Shown here: in pieces, positions 193 to 19,136 of the stretch | Layout of the letters: each line of letters starts with the position of its first letter | Position numbering within the stretch: position 1 is the stretch's first letter | Source of the DNA: Pseudomonas aeruginosa PAO1 | Lineage (GTDB): Bacteria; Pseudomonadota; Gammaproteobacteria; Pseudomonadales; Pseudomonadaceae | Assembly: GCF_000006765.1 (NCBI RefSeq) | Contig: NC_002516.2 | Direction: 5' to 3' (one strand) | DNA length: 64,000 bases | Notes under the pieces: model-generated | Told to the model about the DNA's origin: nothing | What the model saw: only the letters and a program-made list of their open reading frames with translations | Databases searched by the model: none | Translations under genes and position numbers: made by a program

Positions 193-1533
193 ATGACTCG
201 TATGCCCCTGGCCACCGCCAGTCTGCTGGCCCTCGCCATCTCCCTCGCCGGCTGCGGCGACGACAAGAAAGCCGAAGCGCCCGCAACACCGGCGGCCAGC
301 ACGCAGCCCGCCGCGCCCGCCGCCGCCCCGGCCGCCAAGGTCGACGAGGCCGCCGCCAAGGCGGTGATCAAGAATTACGCGGACCTCGCCGAAGCCACCT
401 TCGCCGATGCCCTGAGCACCGCCAAGGACCTGCAGAAAGCCATCGACGCGTTCCTCGCCAAGCCTGACGCGGAGACCCTGAAAGCCGCCAAGGAAGCCTG
501 GTTCGCCGCTCGTACCCCTTACTCCCAGAGCGAAGCCTTCCGCTTCGGCAACGCGATCATCGACGACTGGGAAGGACAGGTTAACGCCTGGCCGCTGGAC
601 GAAGGCCTGATCGACTATGTCGCCAAGGACTACCAGCACGCCCTGGGCAACCCCGGCGCCACCGCCAACATCGTCGCCAACACCGAGATCCAGGTCGGCG
701 AAGACAAGATCGACGTCAAGGAAATCACCGGCGAGAAACTGGCCAGCCTGAACGAGCTGGGCGGTTCCGAAGCCAACGTCGCCACCGGCTACCACGCCAT
801 CGAGTTCCTCCTCTGGGGCCAAGACCTGAACGGCACCGGTCCCGGCGCCGGCAACCGTCCCGCCACCGACTATGCCCAGGGCAAGGACTGCACCGGCGGC
901 CATTGCGACCGTCGTGCCGCCTACCTGAAGGCCGTCACCGACCTGCTGGTCAGCGACCTCGAATACATGGCCGGACAGTGGAAAGCCGGCGTCGCCGACA
1001 ACTACCGCGCCAAGCTGGAGGCCGAACCGGTGGATACCGGCCTGCGCAAGATGTTCTTCGGCATGGGCAGCCTGTCCCTCGGCGAACTGGCCGGCGAGCG
1101 CATGAAGGTCGCGCTGGAGGCCAACTCCACCGAAGACGAGCACGACTGCTTCAGCGACGACACCCACCACACCCTGTTCTTCAACGGCAAGAGCATCCGC
1201 AACATCTACCTCGGCGAGTACAAGCGCATCGACGGCAGCGTGGTCAAGGGCCCGAGCCTGGCCGACCTGGTCGCCAAGGCCGACGCCGCCGCCAACGACA
1301 CCCTGAAGGCCGACCTGGCCGACACCGAGGCCAAGCTGCAGGCCATCGTCGACAGCGCCGAGAAGGATGGCGTGCACTTCGACCAGATGATCGCTCCGGA
1401 CAACAAGGACGGCCAGCAGAAGATCCGCGACGCCATCGCCGCCCTGGTCAAGCAGACCGGCGCCATCGAGCAGGCCGCTGGCAAGCTGGGTATCCAGGAC
1501 CTGAAGCCGGACAACGCCGACCACGAGTTCTGA
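193..1533 (+). CDS. icmP: Imelysin-family outer-membrane lipoprotein (insulin-cleaving metalloproteinase IcmP), 446 aa
   Basis: SD AAGGA at 181-185. Lipobox LAGC, Ala/Pro-rich tether, imelysin GYHAIE (GxHxxE) motif at 787-804. Confidence 0.92.
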   Translation: MTRMPLATASLLALAISLAGCGDDKKAEAPATPAASTQPAAPAAAPAAKVDEAAAKAVIKNYADLAEATFADALSTAKDLQKAIDAFLAKPDAETLKAAKEAWFAARTPYSQSEAFRFGNAIIDDWEGQVNAWPLDEGLIDYVAKDYQHALGNPGATANIVANTEIQVGEDKIDVKEITGEKLASLNELGGSEANVATGYHAIEFLLWGQDLNGTGPGAGNRPATDYAQGKDCTGGHCDRRAAYLKAVTDLLVSDLEYMAGQWKAGVADNYRAKLEAEPVDTGLRKMFFGMGSLSLGELAGERMKVALEANSTEDEHDCFSDDTHHTLFFNGKSIRNIYLGEYKRIDGSVVKGPSLADLVAKADAAANDTLKADLADTEAKLQAIVDSAEKDGVHFDQMIAPDNKDGQQKIRDAIAALVKQTGAIEQAAGKLGIQDLKPDNADHEF

Positions 1534-12874: not shown

Positions 12875-14151
12875 GCAACATCGAGTAAAACTTCGAACCG
12901 GCAGCCATGCGGCTCCACCGCGCTGAGGGTTACGCTCCAGCCCTCGGCGGCGCAGATCCGCTTCACCAGCGAGAGCCCGAGGCCAAGGCCTTCGCCGCGC
13001 CCGGAGCTGGAACTGCCGCGAACGAAGGGCATGAAAATGCGTTCGCGTTGTTCTTCCGGGACGCCCGCCCCGGTGTCCTCGACGCTGAAACCATGCTCGT
13101 CGAGGGTCAGCGTGATGCTCCCGGCATCGGTGTAGTGGGTCGCGTTGCGCAACAGGTTGCCCATCACCGCGCGCAGCAGTGGCGCGTTGAACTGGCCGGC
13201 GCAGGCACCTTCGTTGCGGTAGTGCAGGGTCAGTCCTCGCGCTTCGACCTGTTCGCGCCAGACCTGGACCAGGTCGTCGGCGATGCTCTCCAGGCTACCG
13301 TGGGGCGCCAGGCTTTCCTCGCCCTTCTGCGCACGCGCCAGCAACAGGAAGGTTTGCACCAGGTCGCGCATCTCCTCGGTGGCCTTGGTCATCCGCTCCA
13401 GTTGGCCACGGGCGCGCGGGCCGAGGCTGGGTTCTTCGGCCAGCAGTTCGCATGAGGTGGCGATGACCATCAACGGCGTACGCAACTCATGACTGACGTC
13501 GCTGGTGAACAATTGCTCGCGCTTGAGCGCGTCGCGCAGGCGGCCAAGGGTCTCGTCGAAGGAAGCGGCCAGCTCGCCGACCTCGTCGTTGGCGTAGTCC
13601 GGCGCCAACGGCGGCGCCAGACCGAGCAACTGTTCGCGATGCCGCACCTGGCGCGCCAGGCGCACCACCGGCTCCATCACCTTGCGCGCGAGCATCCAGC
13701 CAAGCAGGCCGGCCAGGGCGATGCTCAGCACGTAGCCGGTCAGCACCGAGGCGTAGAGCACCTGCTCGCGCGCTTCGAAATCGCTCTGGTCCTGCAGCAG
13801 GACGAAGCGGCGACCATCGATGTCGCGCACCAGCGCATGGAACGACAAGTCGCCCTCGAACACTTCGTGGAAACCGACATCCAGTTGGTCCAGCGCCGGC
13901 GGCATGGCGTAGGAGCCCTGGCCGTCGCTGATGAAGAAGCGCATGCCGGGATCGAGCACCGGGTTGCGTCCCTGGGCCAGGTCGTCGCGCAGGATGCGCT
14001 CCAGCTCGCCGCCCAGGTCGCGGGAAATCAGGCGCTCCTCGATGATGTGGACCACGCCGACGATGCCGGCGGAGAACAGTCCCCCCACGGCGACCGTCAT
14101 CAGCATGAAGGCGATGACGATCCGGCGGGCGAGGCTCTGCTTATACTCCAT
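12871..14151 (-). CDS. colS: Two-component sensor histidine kinase ColS, 426 aa
   Basis: Two TM segments, H35/E38 and FEARE (ExxE) periplasmic metal motifs, HAMP, SHELRTPL H-box, GLGLGLS G-box. Confidence 0.9.
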   Translation of the reverse strand: MEYKQSLARRIVIAFMLMTVAVGGLFSAGIVGVVHIIEERLISRDLGGELERILRDDLAQGRNPVLDPGMRFFISDGQGSYAMPPALDQLDVGFHEVFEGDLSFHALVRDIDGRRFVLLQDQSDFEAREQVLYASVLTGYVLSIALAGLLGWMLARKVMEPVVRLARQVRHREQLLGLAPPLAPDYANDEVGELAASFDETLGRLRDALKREQLFTSDVSHELRTPLMVIATSCELLAEEPSLGPRARGQLERMTKATEEMRDLVQTFLLLARAQKGEESLAPHGSLESIADDLVQVWREQVEARGLTLHYRNEGACAGQFNAPLLRAVMGNLLRNATHYTDAGSITLTLDEHGFSVEDTGAGVPEEQRERIFMPFVRGSSSSGRGEGLGLGLSLVKRICAAEGWSVTLSAVEPHGCRFEVLLDVA

Positions 14152-14824
14152 TCGGCTCCTCCGCCAGGCGGTAGCCGACGCCATGCACCGTATGCAGCAA
14201 GGCCACGGAGAATGGCTTGTCGATCACCTGACGGAGTTGATGGACGTGGCTGCGCAGGCTGTCACTGTCCGGGCAGTCGTCGCCCCAGACCGCTTCTTCC
14301 AGGGCATCCCGGCGCACCACATGGGGGCTCTTCTGCATCAGCACGGCGAGCAGCTTTAGGCCGATCGGATTGAGCTTGAGCGACTTGCCCGCGCGCTTGA
14401 CCTCCAGGGTATCCAGGTCATAGCTGAGATCGGCCACGCTCAGCTCGCGGCGGCCGCCACCCTGGGCGCGACGCAGCACCGCCTCGATGCGTGCGGAAAG
14501 TTCGGAAAGGGCGAAGGGCTTGACCAGGTAATCGTCGGCTCCGGAACGAAACCCCTGCAGGCGATCGTCCAACTGGTCGCGGGCGGTGAGCATGATCACC
14601 GGGGTGTCGCGCCGTGCGTCTTCGCGCAGGCGCCGGCACAGGGCATAGCCGTCGATTCCCGGCAGCATCACGTCGAGCACGATCAGGTCGTAGTGCTCGG
14701 TGGCCGCCAGGTGCAGGCCGGACAGCCCGTCCTGCGCGCAATCCACGGTATAGCCCTTGAGCGACAGGTAATCGGCCAGGTTGGCCAGGATGTCGCGGTT
14801 GTCTTCGACCACCAGTATTCGCAT
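14141..14824 (-). CDS. colR: OmpR-family response regulator ColR, 227 aa
   Basis: SD AAGGAG. MRILVVED, LDVMLP phospho-Asp, KPF, winged helix TVHGVGY. Confidence 0.92.
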   Translation of the reverse strand: MRILVVEDNRDILANLADYLSLKGYTVDCAQDGLSGLHLAATEHYDLIVLDVMLPGIDGYALCRRLREDARRDTPVIMLTARDQLDDRLQGFRSGADDYLVKPFALSELSARIEAVLRRAQGGGRRELSVADLSYDLDTLEVKRAGKSLKLNPIGLKLLAVLMQKSPHVVRRDALEEAVWGDDCPDSDSLRSHVHQLRQVIDKPFSVALLHTVHGVGYRLAEEPNGV

Positions 14825-14868
14825 GTCCCACTCCTTCGCAGGAAGACCGATCGAGCGCCTCTCGCGCA

Positions 14869-14895
14869 TTTACGGATTCTTCACCGGCGATTCAC
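14869..14895 (+). promoter_or_regulatory. ColR-type direct-repeat operator in the colR/PAP2 intergenic region
   Basis: TTTAC-N6-TTCAC-N6-TTCAC at 14869, 14880 and 14891 (11-bp period). Confidence 0.65.
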
Positions 14896-15040: not shown

Positions 15041-15835
15041 ATGACCCAGGCCGCCGTCCATTCCCCTTCCCGTCCATTCAACCCCTGGCTGTTCCTCGCC
15101 CTGCCGCTGGGCCTGGCGGCACTGCTGCTGGCCTTCGAGCCGGTGACCCTCGACCTCGCCCTGGCCAACCTGATGTACGACCCGGGCGCCGGCTTCATCG
15201 GCCGGCACAGTTGGTTCCTGGAGAACATCCTGCACGACCGGGTCAAGCAACTGGTGATCGCCATCAGCGTCCTCGGCCTGCTGGTCTCCATCGCCGGACT
15301 GTTCCACCGGCCATGGCGCGCACTGAGCAGGCCGCTGGCCTATGTGTTCCTCGCCATGAGCCTTGCAGCCAGCATAGTCACTCCGCTCAAGGCGCTCACC
15401 GCCGTGCAGTGCCCCTGGAGCCTGGCGCAGTTCGGCGGCGAGGAAACCTATAGTTCGCTGCTCAGCCCACGGCCGCCGACCGAGCACCCCGGACGCTGCT
15501 GGCCGGGCGGGCACGCATCGTCCGGATTCGTCCTGTTCGCGCTGTTCTTCGCCCTGCGCGACCGCAAGCCCAGGCTGGCGCGCTACGCCCTGGCCTTCGC
15601 CTTCGCCATGGGCTGTCTGCTATCGCTGTCGCGCATGCTGCAAGGTGCGCACTTCCTCTCGCACAACCTGTGGACGATGCTGTTCGACTGGCTGATCTGC
15701 CTCGGCCTGTACCGCCTGATGCTCTACCGACCGGAGACGCGGGGACAGCGCAACGGCGGCGCCGACGAAAACCGCGTTCAGGAAGACGATTCGTCCGCTC
15801 CCAGCACGCCGAACTCGATGGGCACCTTCATGTAG
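15041..15835 (+). CDS. PAP2-family membrane phosphatase (lipid A phosphatase-like)
   Basis: SD GGAG. K..CPW, WPGGHAS and SRMLQGAHF PAP2 motifs, several TM helices. Confidence 0.85.
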   Translation: MTQAAVHSPSRPFNPWLFLALPLGLAALLLAFEPVTLDLALANLMYDPGAGFIGRHSWFLENILHDRVKQLVIAISVLGLLVSIAGLFHRPWRALSRPLAYVFLAMSLAASIVTPLKALTAVQCPWSLAQFGGEETYSSLLSPRPPTEHPGRCWPGGHASSGFVLFALFFALRDRKPRLARYALAFAFAMGCLLSLSRMLQGAHFLSHNLWTMLFDWLICLGLYRLMLYRPETRGQRNGGADENRVQEDDSSAPSTPNSMGTFM

Positions 15836-16107
15836 AACAGCCGCACGCCGGCCTGGCGGATCGACTCGAACAGCCGTTCTGACTGCTCGGGATCGACCGC
15901 CATGAGGATTTCCTGCGGCTGGTCGGCCAGCTCGAAGAAGTGCATCGAATGCAGCCGGCCGCTCTGGCCGAAGCCTTCGCTGGCAGCCAGCGCGGTGGCA
16001 CCGCGCACGCCCAGGCGGCGCGCCTCTTCCAGCAGCCAGTCGCAGATCGGCTGGCCCTGGTGGCGGCGCCCCTGCTGGGTGATGAAGGTCAGTTGATAGC
16101 CTTGCAT
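15778..16107 (-). CDS. DUF190-family PII-like protein, 109 aa
   Basis: Strong SD GGGAGGA 6 nt upstream. GATAL...EGFGQSGRLH and ELA.QP motifs. Starts 19 nt after the crcB stop. Confidence 0.8.
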   Translation of the reverse strand: MQGYQLTFITQQGRRHQGQPICDWLLEEARRLGVRGATALAASEGFGQSGRLHSMHFFELADQPQEILMAVDPEQSERLFESIRQAGVRLFYMKVPIEFGVLGADESSS

Positions 16108-16126
16108 GGTCGGTCCTCCCGCTGCG

Positions 16127-16510
16127 CTATTTGCCCAGCATCCAGTTCATCGAGAACAACCCCAGCAGGGTCATCAGCAACGAGCCGCTGACGTGCGTCG
16201 CGATGGCCCCGGCGGCCCAGCCCAGGCGGCCCTCCTGAAGCAGGCTGACGACCTCGGCGGAAAAGGTGGAGAAAGTGGTCAGGCCGCCGCAGAACCCGGT
16301 GATGATCAGTAGCCGCCATTCCGGAGCGATGCCCGGCGCCTGGGCGAAATAGGCAATCGCCGCGCCGATGACATAGCCGCCGACCAGGTTGGCCAGCAGC
16401 GTGCCGGGGGGAATGCTGGGCAGCAGGCTGTTCAGCTTGAGCCCGAGGAACCAGCGCAGCAACGCCCCCAGGGCGGCGCCGAGGGCGATGGCGAGAATGG
16501 ATTTCCACAT
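16127..16510 (-). CDS. crcB: Fluoride efflux channel Fluc/CrcB, 127 aa
   Basis: [21 protein letters not shown] and [12 protein letters not shown] signatures. Lies downstream of a fluoride riboswitch. Confidence 0.95.
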
Positions 16511-16580
16511 AGTCCTGTCCTTGTAGGAGCGATTCGGACAGGCGGCAGGCGAGCGCCTACGCGCCTTTCCAGGTTCATGC

Positions 16581-16630
16581 GTAGGCATCATCAGCCCCAG
16601 GGGCGGTTGAAGGAGGAATGCCATCTCCTG
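16581..16630 (-). ncRNA. Fluoride riboswitch aptamer (crcB motif)
   Basis: Minus strand GGAGATGGCATTCCTCCTTCAACCGCCCCTGGGGCTGATGATGCCTAC. P1 GGAG/CTCC, pseudoknot GGCATT/GATGCC, P2 GCCCC..GGGGC. Confidence 0.93.
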
Positions 16631-16636
16631 TCGGCA

Positions 16637-16665
16637 AGATTGGCACAAAGCGAGGCACCTATCAA
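16637..16665 (-). promoter_or_regulatory. sigma70 promoter for the riboswitch-crcB transcript
   Basis: TTGATA-N17-CAATCT with extended TG. Predicted start near 16630, at the aptamer 5' end. Confidence 0.65.
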
Positions 16666-16738
16666 AGGCCGGAGTACGCCGGATCGCCCGAAGCGTGCCA
16701 GTCTAGGGAACCTTCCCCCTTCCTTCGCCGGAGCCCCC

Positions 16739-17425
16739 ATGCGCCCAGTCCTGCTGCTTTGCTGCCTGTTCCTGTCCGCCACCGCCCAGGCCGAGGATTG
16801 CTCGCCGCAAACCTCTGTCGGTAGCTGGTGCGAGCTGCCGCTCGCGGCCCTCCACCCGACCCAGCAGAATGTCGGCCTGCTGCAGGTCGAGGATGACCAG
16901 GCCAAGCTCGCCGGGAAGAAGCCCAAGGCTCTCGAGCGCTACTTGCGCAAGAAGGAGATTCCGGTGGTGATCGGCCCCGGCGGCCGCTTCTACCTCACCG
17001 ATCGCCATCACCTGAGTAGCGCGCTCTGGCGCCTGGACCCGAAACAGGGCGTGCCGGTGAAGGTGATCGGCCGGCTACCCCAGGCCAGCGACTTCTGGGA
17101 GAAGATGCAGGAAAACCACTGGGTCTGGCTGCACGATGCGCGTGGCGCGGAGATCCCGCCCGAGGCCCTGCCGGACGCTCTCGCCGGGCTTGGCGACGAT
17201 CCCTACCGCGCCCTGGCCGGCTACGCCGAGGACGAGAACGCCTTCGACAAGGATCGGCAGAGCTATTTCATCGAATTCCACTGGGCGCGCTATTTCGGCG
17301 AACGCATGCACTGGCGGCCGATCAGCCGCGCCACTCTGCCCGACGACCTGAAGCAGGCACTGCGCCTGGCCTGCGAACCGGCGGCAAGGGAGCTGCCGGG
17401 CTACCGCCAGGACTGCCCGCACTGA
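16739..17425 (+). CDS. Exported ParB/Srx (ParBc_2-like) domain protein, 228 aa
   Basis: Signal peptide ending AQA. L.PTQ..VG, IPVVIGP and YLTDRHH motifs, DDPYRALAG, YFIEF.WA. Confidence 0.75.
   Translation: MRPVLLLCCLFLSATAQAEDCSPQTSVGSWCELPLAALHPTQQNVGLLQVEDDQAKLAGKKPKALERYLRKKEIPVVIGPGGRFYLTDRHHLSSALWRLDPKQGVPVKVIGRLPQASDFWEKMQENHWVWLHDARGAEIPPEALPDALAGLGDDPYRALAGYAEDENAFDKDRQSYFIEFHWARYFGERMHWRPISRATLPDDLKQALRLACEPAARELPGYRQDCPH

Positions 17426-17480: not shown

Positions 17481-19136
<1,656 letters not shown>

Follow-up and report, generated by a model that had tools for sequence, protein, structure and literature searches.

In Pseudomonas aeruginosa PAO1, the fluoride channel gene crcB is followed by a small gene of the DUF190 family, and both lie behind a fluoride riboswitch. 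The pair is located in a 64,000-nucleotide stretch of contig NC_002516.2, referred to here as the window. Comparison of the locus with its relatives revealed that the pairing of crcB with DUF190 is conserved beyond chance. The locus is best explained as a fluoride-induced two-gene unit that encodes the channel and a small cytoplasmic protein, DUF190, which forms a module with crcB in both deep branches of the DUF190 family. The link of the family is to fluoride export and not to Fluc-type channels alone. DUF190 may thus assist or regulate fluoride export, most likely by direct contact, a reading to which we give an even chance. The module is widespread and the window copy is not unusual in itself, so that the interest lies at the level of the family.

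Features of the locus are listed in Table 1 by their positions in the window, and relatives were compared with G001, the nearest genome (87% shared words), as the centre. The crcB product is identified by PF02537 (E 3.9e-29) and by the NCBIfam equivalog NF010792, at 190.1 bits where 125 are required, and carries all residues that are invariant in a 43-sequence CrcB alignment, A5 (G15, R19, T37, N41, G72, G75, T79, S81 and G117). Its TAG stop codon occupies positions 16127-16129 and the DUF190 ATG positions 16105-16107, leaving a gap of 19 nt in which the Shine-Dalgarno sequence GGGAGGA ends 6 nt before the ATG. A preliminary description of this DNA, made from the letters alone, had reported the 109-aa open reading frame (ORF) with this ribosome-binding site and spacing, and both the coordinates and the match of the protein to PF02641 (DUF190; 50.2 bits against a cut-off of 23.4, residues 6-85) bear this out. 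The overlap with a convergent gene that it described is likewise real and amounts to 58 nt with a PAP2-family ORF. Its remark that the gene is easily missed did not hold, as public entries of close relatives, including P. aeruginosa, read "DUF190 domain-containing protein" or "PII-like signaling protein". Scanning for terminator-like sites found none between crcB and DUF190 and none across positions 15500-16900, which fits a single transcript. The DUF190 gene therefore lies on the same strand as the RF01734 aptamer and 3' of it, with no intervening terminator. The riboswitch-led transcript claimed earlier is in this way supported in its layout, and the transcript itself is putative. A clear terminator or anti-terminator was not found in the leader by minimum free energy (MFE) folding and the terminator-site scan. 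G001 is near-identical to the window over the crcB-DUF190 stretch in a pairwise DNA alignment. At the C6 run within crcB, G001 (L061, G001:C1:4946000-4954700) has C5, which shifts the crcB frame after about codon 33; the contigs of four public RNA runs have no indel at this run. The G001 frameshift could be a true inactivation, phase-type homopolymer variation or an error of the G001 assembly.

The linkage was surveyed within the genus, the phylum and across phyla. Among 25 genomes of the genus, searched with the Pfam models of both crcB and DUF190, 20 of the 22 DUF190 genes came immediately 3' of crcB and shared its strand. Of the two exceptions, the L059 gene belongs to a fluoride-riboswitch operon of two MutS-like genes, DUF190 and an enolase gene. 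The other, at L060 (G017:C51, 6394-6946, minus strand), is a lone second DUF190 gene that directly follows a fluoride riboswitch of its own; a riboswitch-crcB-DUF190 unit lies about 1.6 kb away. In a phylum sample of 401 genomes, a tally that takes in the unpublished genome G421, from which no locus was taken, DUF190 was present in 131 genomes and in 57 of 211 genera. One locus per genus was scored with purpose-built hidden Markov models, and crcB adjoined DUF190 in 18 genera beyond the window's own. Other contexts were riboswitch-CLC operons (two loci), a position after an AcrB-type pump gene (two) and no recognisable partner (four), together with the related families f56, f78 and f99 and family f53, in which DUF190 is followed by a Crp/FNR-type regulator gene. 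A cross-phylum scan, with one genome per species, used the narrower canonical alignment A2, since the broad alignment A1 offered no conserved segment suited to the scan. Here crcB was immediately upstream on the same strand in 79 of 80 DUF190 loci, the exception being cut by a contig end. Since the A2 query consists mostly of crcB-linked proteins, these 80 loci, which are best matches, are biased to canonical, crcB-linked DUF190. They span more than 15 phyla, among them Nitrospirota, Acidobacteriota, Calditrichota, Chloroflexota, Planctomycetota, Omnitrophota, Elusimicrobiota, Gemmatimonadota, Bacteroidota, Verrucomicrobiota, Thermodesulfobacteriota and Methanosarcinales archaea. Between the crcB stop codon and the DUF190 start codon lay a median of 10 nt, and at most 30 nt in 85 of 100 pairs. 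By the genus and cross-phylum counts and this spacing, the linkage is among the tightest gene pairs measurable in this analysis. The co-occurrence that the preliminary description had proposed as a check was therefore found, in a sample with the bias just described at its widest range. Long ORFs in GC-rich loci that seemingly joined crcB and DUF190 (L002, L039, L046 and L051) were artefacts of ORF calling in other frames and were rejected.

To place the DUF190 protein structurally, we used sequence searches and an AlphaFold2 (AF2) model. A word search returned 408 relatives, and the PDB contains two sequence relatives, TM0021 (1o51, E 8.6e-8) and PH1503 (2dcl, E 4.6e-5). The AF2 model, built from a 63-sequence alignment, had a pLDDT of 85.6 and the order beta-alpha-beta-beta-alpha-beta with a long loop after strand 2; confidence was poorest in this loop, at residues 45-60. 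Foldseek gave 55 PDB matches with E at or below 0.001, and the matches listed are PII or PII-like proteins: TM0021 and PH1503 came first, followed by CPII, TTHA0516, SbtB and GlnK/GlnZ proteins. This ranking places DUF190 in the PII superfamily, and the modelled window protein has a GlnB-like fold, in agreement with the PII-like nature first proposed for it. The 2dcl entry contains three chains of one sequence, which is compatible with a trimer and is no proof of one. The protein is not a canonical PII protein. Pfam P-II (PF00543) stayed below its cut-off (18.4 against 25 bits), with residues 25-86 aligning to profile positions 16-77, and no Gly-rich motif was apparent between helix 2 and strand 4 when the consensus of each clade was compared by eye with the PII motif. 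Nucleotide sensing, in line with the nucleotide binding suggested earlier for DUF190, is therefore doubtful.

Few residues are conserved throughout alignments A1 (26 sequences) and A3 (63 sequences). In window numbering, G36, G45, G47 and H53 are invariant or at least 90% conserved, and L60 and P64 are nearly so. The G45-F-G47-x5-H53 motif opens the loop that corresponds to the T-loop of PII proteins, and it appears homologous to the G-F-G-R-Q-K-G-H segment of GlnB. The "His-rich" LHSMH loop highlighted earlier is thereby upheld in part: its first His is H53, invariant family-wide with G45 and G47, and its second His is kept only within the clade of the window protein.

The DUF190 tree splits at a long branch with full support into two deep clades, both of them crcB-linked. 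Clade I holds 24 rows including the window protein, with contexts of CrcB (17), CLC (3), MutS/enolase (1) and none (3), so that every recognisable context is fluoride-related. Clade II, the canonical type, holds most crcB-linked members, a Crp-linked clade and an RND-linked pair. Residues R7, E12, D14, E68 and D71 are invariant in clade II and missing from clade I, which has its own invariant residues W24, F57 and G100. This suggests that the ligand or contact surface of DUF190 may differ between the clades. Fluoride riboswitches are common in clade-I loci and were found at 1 of 15 canonical loci tested, in line with the approximately 15% of Flucs that are under riboswitch control according to a review (PMC11139923). 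Units in which a fluoride riboswitch accompanies relatives were recorded at L005, L010, L011, L059, L060, L062, L063, L064, L091, L170 and L171. At L064 (G015:C46, 91-1444, minus strand), the riboswitch precedes a gene for a CMAS-type cyclopropane-fatty-acid synthase, a unit that points to membrane remodelling within a fluoride regulon.

In the CrcB tree, the partners of clade-I DUF190 proteins form one well-supported clade (support 99, 26 rows), which indicates that crcB and DUF190 diversified together. Nested in this clade are 11 CrcBs without DUF190, ten from the same genus or family and one from a genome of the same class (G342). Nine of the 11 keep a fluoride riboswitch directly upstream (L150-L155, L157, L158 and L167). 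At L167 (G375:C22, about 1436-1492, minus strand), a remnant of the DUF190 N-terminus, 19 aa long, follows the riboswitch-led crcB immediately and represents a footprint of gene loss. The nested riboswitch-crcB units and the remnant together indicate that DUF190 was lost repeatedly and that the channel evidently works alone. Loss beside a retained crcB in close relatives makes DUF190 an accessory and not a required subunit.

A second fluoride exporter has a PII-like companion of its own. The L005 and L010 operons consist of a fluoride riboswitch, a CLC gene, one or two copies of a gene for a protein of about 120 aa, DUF190, and an enolase or phosphoglycerate-mutase-like gene. The ~120-aa protein is a divergent DUF190 relative, scoring 20-22 bits with Pfam DUF190, short of the cut-off; comparison of its profile with the DUF190 alignment gave a probability of 95%. 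It carries SHHH in place of the G-F-G..H loop and is annotated "hypothetical" or "DUF190". Its gene directly follows CLC-type exporter genes in fluoride-riboswitch operons, and precedes crcB in one Pseudomonas locus. Two plasmid loci with RefSeq-annotated gene orders, independent of L005 and L010, have the same arrangement. On the P. syringae plasmid pPs0170 (L170, NZ_KY362372.1, 7001-13050), the order is DUF190, riboswitch, CLC, paralogue, DUF190, two hypothetical genes, eno, ppa and a uracil-DNA glycosylase gene, and this fluoride island adjoins copper-resistance genes. On the Comamonas sp. C11 plasmid (L171, NZ_CP101745.1, 2772-5762), a single riboswitch is followed by CLC, paralogue, crcB, DUF190 and an EamA transporter gene, forming a compact mobile fluoride-export cassette beside an ars operon and an IS3 element. 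The L171 order assigns each exporter its own PII-like gene. Two unrelated fluoride exporters, each with its own PII-like gene, are what an exporter-specific partner predicts and a general stress protein does not. DUF190 occurs on 33 plasmid records, of which 17 are conjugative or mobilisable.

DUF190 is also found away from exporters. The contexts of the family extend beyond Fluc to CLC, MutS-like/enolase, lone, Crp and RND settings. The Crp/FNR-linked proteins are monophyletic and comprise 22 loci (L017, L020-L022, L024 and 17 further) in families f56, f78 and f99. They come from small (~2 Mb) genomes of the same phylum, and the gene for a regulator with a cyclic-nucleotide-binding domain always comes after DUF190. 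This clade retains the clade-II signature residues. No fluoride riboswitch was found at the 8 of 22 Crp-linked loci checked, nor at crcB elsewhere in the five genomes checked. The Crp-linked DUF190 and its regulator might form a protein-based signalling pair. Four weak Pfam "DUF190" matches beside SbtA are SbtB-like, form a tree clade of their own apart from DUF190 and were set aside; such proteins could be miscounted as DUF190. At one locus (L042, 2801-4869), an SbtA-like transporter gene and an SbtB-like PII gene adjoin a convergent inorganic pyrophosphatase gene.

To evaluate direct contact, we predicted a complex of two CrcB chains and one DUF190 chain, using the proteins' own alignments and three controls. 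The ipSAE was 0.38 (runs 0.37, 0.38 and 0.43) compared to 0.00 in all three controls, a result classed as weak support; the pLDDT of the partner was 74, and at least 90% of contacts recurred from run to run. Structure prediction, a check suggested in the preliminary description, thus scored above the controls but is weak by calibration, where passes at 0.60 or less came from 7 of 80 solved complexes and from 2 of 110 mismatched pairs (both of the mismatched pairs that passed). The gene-order evidence suggests that the prior for a CrcB-DUF190 pair is not low, and the model score alone proves nothing. Taken together, physical binding of DUF190 to the exporter is plausible, and we put it slightly below an even chance. 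In the most likely mechanism, rising fluoride would induce DUF190 along with the channel, and DUF190 would dock on the cytoplasmic face of the exporter through the G-F-G-x5-H loop, the counterpart of the PII T-loop, and would modulate flux or stop back-flux, as PII-like proteins do on AmtB and SbtA. In its most specific form, DUF190 and the "HHH" paralogue would be exporter-specific check valves, co-produced with Fluc or CLC(F) in response to fluoride stress and docked asymmetrically, that close when the membrane potential or proton-motive force falls or a ligand signals, preventing re-entry of fluoride. A potential-driven channel and an F-/H+ antiporter would both run backwards in a de-energised membrane, and a block of reverse flux would explain a partner on both exporter types. 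GlnK-style gating is nevertheless speculative; a gate or valve role for DUF190 is in our estimate improbable, and the paired check valves are an unlikely outcome to the same degree.

Several observations weigh against an exporter partner. For a pair with no strong prior, a complex that passes at 0.60 or less is more probably a false than a true one, and the prediction came with no interface. By the literature, Fluc forms dimers of dual topology and PII-like proteins form trimers. Symmetric trimer-on-trimer docking in the style of GlnK and AmtB would therefore fail, and a DUF190 trimer could bind only asymmetrically. The common riboswitch-crcB-DUF190 transcript and the expression of its genes are both predictions from the DNA. 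DUF190 occurs without an adjacent exporter in the MutS-like/enolase operon, alone behind a riboswitch and before Crp-type regulators, and two further DUF190 genes follow an AcrB-type RND pump gene directly (L030, 781-4435, and L055, 751-4342, both plus strand). Most Flucs lack DUF190: riboswitch-crcB is kept without it in 6 of 25 genomes of the genus, and in other genera of the order, DUF190 was present in 0 of 16 and crcB in 14 of 16. No ORF with both domains was found among the loci fetched for the survey or the nearest ESM Atlas clusters, a negative limited by the length window of the word search, which would hide fusions. In P. putida, CrcB is the main fluoride defence and the accessible part of that study makes no mention of DUF190 (PMC9796867), which agrees with a channel that works without it.

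The principal rival holds that DUF190 is a soluble PII-like transducer of fluoride stress that senses a small molecule (fluoride, a metal-fluoride or nucleotide complex) or the energy charge and directs its action at regulators or other cytoplasmic targets, its position beside crcB reflecting a shared regulon and not contact with the channel. The exporter-free riboswitch units, one with two MutS-like genes, DUF190 and enolase (L059) and one with DUF190 alone (L060), speak for this explanation, as do the plasmid islands that join DUF190 with eno and ppa and the 22-locus monophyletic Crp/FNR-linked clade with its clade-II signature. Canonical PII proteins also act on regulators. A transducer leaves unexplained, however, the near-invariant position 3' of crcB with a median spacer of 10 nt across phyla, the parallel paralogue 3' of CLC exporters and the joint diversification of CrcB and DUF190. 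We consider it a minority possibility, yet the most serious alternative, and it is compatible with an exporter partner since PII proteins typically have multiple targets.

The clade-specific residues and the losses bear on the other alternatives. The invariant H53, together with R7, E12, D14, E68 and D71 in clade II, would suit a CutA-like cytoplasmic buffer that binds divalent cations or metal-fluoride through the conserved His and acidic residues, lessening the damage done by fluoride, and leaves the exporter untouched. Two sources are in keeping with this, in that PII-like CutA is tied to metal tolerance and copper binding (PMC12685090) and fluoride disturbs divalent-cation homeostasis (PMC11139923). 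The acidic signature is missing from clade I, however, including the window protein, and clade I is crcB-linked all the same. There is no evidence of a metal site, a buffer would have to be abundant, and its gene would not be expected to pair tightly with that of a channel, which leaves a buffer a slim prospect. Tight operon coupling and joint diversification could be read as signs of a structural subunit or assembly factor that this Fluc subtype cannot do without. The CrcBs inside the DUF190-linked clade that lack DUF190 and retain the riboswitch, the 19-aa remnant after one such crcB, and the Flucs studied in bilayers, which reportedly work alone, make this explanation slimmer still. A fortuitous adjacency of no function has nothing in its favour beyond the lack of experiments; with the pairing kept across bacteria and archaea, in both deep clades, under riboswitch control and as a plasmid module, we give it almost no credence. 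Collectively, these results favour DUF190 as an accessory or regulator of fluoride export over each alternative taken singly.

An exporter partner of this kind resembles several characterised systems. GlnK-AmtB, the precedent for plugging of a pore from the cytoplasm, likewise has the gene for a small PII-fold protein beside that of a membrane channel in one operon, and shares the long loop after strand 2 with a G-F-G motif. It differs in that DUF190 scores 18.4 bits against the P-II threshold of 25 with no apparent Gly-rich B-loop, that the Fluc target is a dual-topology dimer compared to the AmtB trimer, and that fluoride is exported whereas ammonium is imported. In addition, glnK usually precedes amtB, an order that is reversed in crcB-DUF190. 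Synthetic monobodies provide a different parallel, since a loop of these soluble proteins reportedly occludes the Fluc vestibule from one side like a cork in a bottle; they are engineered binders unrelated to DUF190. In SbtB-SbtA, a PII-like gene directly follows the transporter gene, and SbtB chains are among the Foldseek matches of DUF190. Ligands of SbtB are adenine nucleotides, cAMP and c-di-AMP, and SbtB possesses a redox R-loop, features that would be hypothetical for DUF190. SbtB and B. subtilis GlnK have been proposed as one-way valve plugs on SbtA and AmtB that stop reverse flux upon de-energisation (bioRxiv 10.1101/2023.08.10.552651). The carboxysome-associated CPII of Thiomonas is the closest functionally studied structure by Foldseek (E 1.2e-5), but shares only about 20% identity and has another genomic context, and anion binding by DUF190 is conjecture. 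TM0021 and PH1503 belong to the same family and are the best structural matches, with TM-scores normalised to target length of 0.89 and 0.78. Both are of the canonical clade-II type, unlike the clade-I window protein without R7, E12, D14, E68 and D71, and their entry titles give no function or partner. Finally, flJ is a DUF190 gene in the fluorometabolite cluster of Streptomyces cattleya (PMC9173684). Its presence in a fluorine-related cluster supports the link of the family to fluoride, in a biosynthetic context with no crcB operon.

To our knowledge, Fluc channels are regarded as pores that are always open and not regulated. A published function for DUF190 or for the crcB-DUF190 pair was not found in the literature searched, in agreement with the preliminary description; two reviews that probably treat exporter neighbourhoods (PMC8217344 and PMC4140402) lie outside that search, and the linkage may be already noted. 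A review of fluoride exporters covers regulation at the gene level and, in its accessible part, names no protein partner (PMC11139923), and one genome paper speculated that DUF190 is a GlnK-like modulator of transport. The crcB-DUF190 pair is a strong candidate for a PII-like guardian of a transporter, here a toxin exporter of dimeric architecture. Under the check-valve reading, fluoride channels would gain their first natural protein regulator, and a PII-type protein would for the first time act on a dimeric dual-topology channel and on an exporter. An exporter partner would carry the rule of PII-like transporter guards beyond nutrient importers and trimeric targets, to a toxin exporter that is dimeric, and a family with two orphan crystal structures would gain a function. 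The presence of DUF190 behind crcB in many phyla and of a sister family behind CLC exporters points to a missing layer of fluoride homeostasis. This may also be relevant to the construction of fluoride-tolerant strains that synthesise or degrade organofluorines.

Table 1. Features of the crcB-DUF190 locus (window positions) and DUF190-like paralogues (positions in the named locus).
Feature	Position	Strand	Basis
Fluoride riboswitch aptamer, RF01734	16575-16637	-	cmscan 57.4 bits (gathering score 34), E 5.3e-14, model 1-64 complete
Leader from aptamer to crcB start, 64 nt; putative expression platform	16511-16574	-	MFE fold: GC-rich hairpin without U-tract, z-score -1.84
crcB, Fluc-type fluoride channel, 127 aa	16127-16510	-	PF02537, NF010792
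C6 run within crcB	16406-16411	-	Pairwise DNA alignment with G001
crcB-DUF190 spacer, 19 nt, with Shine-Dalgarno GGGAGGA at 16114-16120	16108-16126	-	Sequence reading
DUF190/COG1993 PII-like protein, 109 aa	15778-16107	-	PF02641, PDB relatives, AF2 model, Foldseek
T-loop-like segment, DUF190 codons 43-64 (G45-F-G47-x5-H53)	15916-15981	-	Invariant columns, per-clade conservation, lowest model confidence
Overlap of convergent 3' ends, DUF190 and PAP2-family gene, 58 nt	15778-15835	.	ORF list, Pfam PF01569
DUF190-like paralogue, L005	4356-4721	-	
DUF190-like paralogue, L010	4362-4982	-	
DUF190-like paralogue, L010	4802-5230	-	
DUF190-like paralogue, L062	3249-3653	+	
DUF190-like paralogue, L170	8916-9281	+	
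DUF190-like paralogue, L171	4243-4581	+	

The PAP2-family ORF (15041-15835, plus strand) is convergent with DUF190 and matches Pfam PF01569, with sub-threshold NCBIfam matches to lipid A phosphatases. The Pfam matches of both proteins stop short of the overlap, at residue 85 of 109 in DUF190 and residue 230 of 264 in the PAP2-family protein, and the final DUF190 residues are poorly conserved in the per-clade comparison. As the 3' end of the PAP2-family gene reaches 58 nt into DUF190, fluoride-induced read-through would be antisense to it. A gene for a ColR-like response regulator (14141-14869, minus strand) adjoins the PAP2-family gene on its other side. Further neighbours of the locus are a ParB-like nuclease-domain protein gene, groEL and a Pseudomon-groES RNA. 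At window position 17486, in the 3' end of groEL (17481-19124, minus strand), the contigs of three of the four RNA runs carry a 9-nt insertion, CATGCCGCC. This insertion adds one Gly-Gly-Met unit to the C-terminal repeat of GroEL and represents strain variation.

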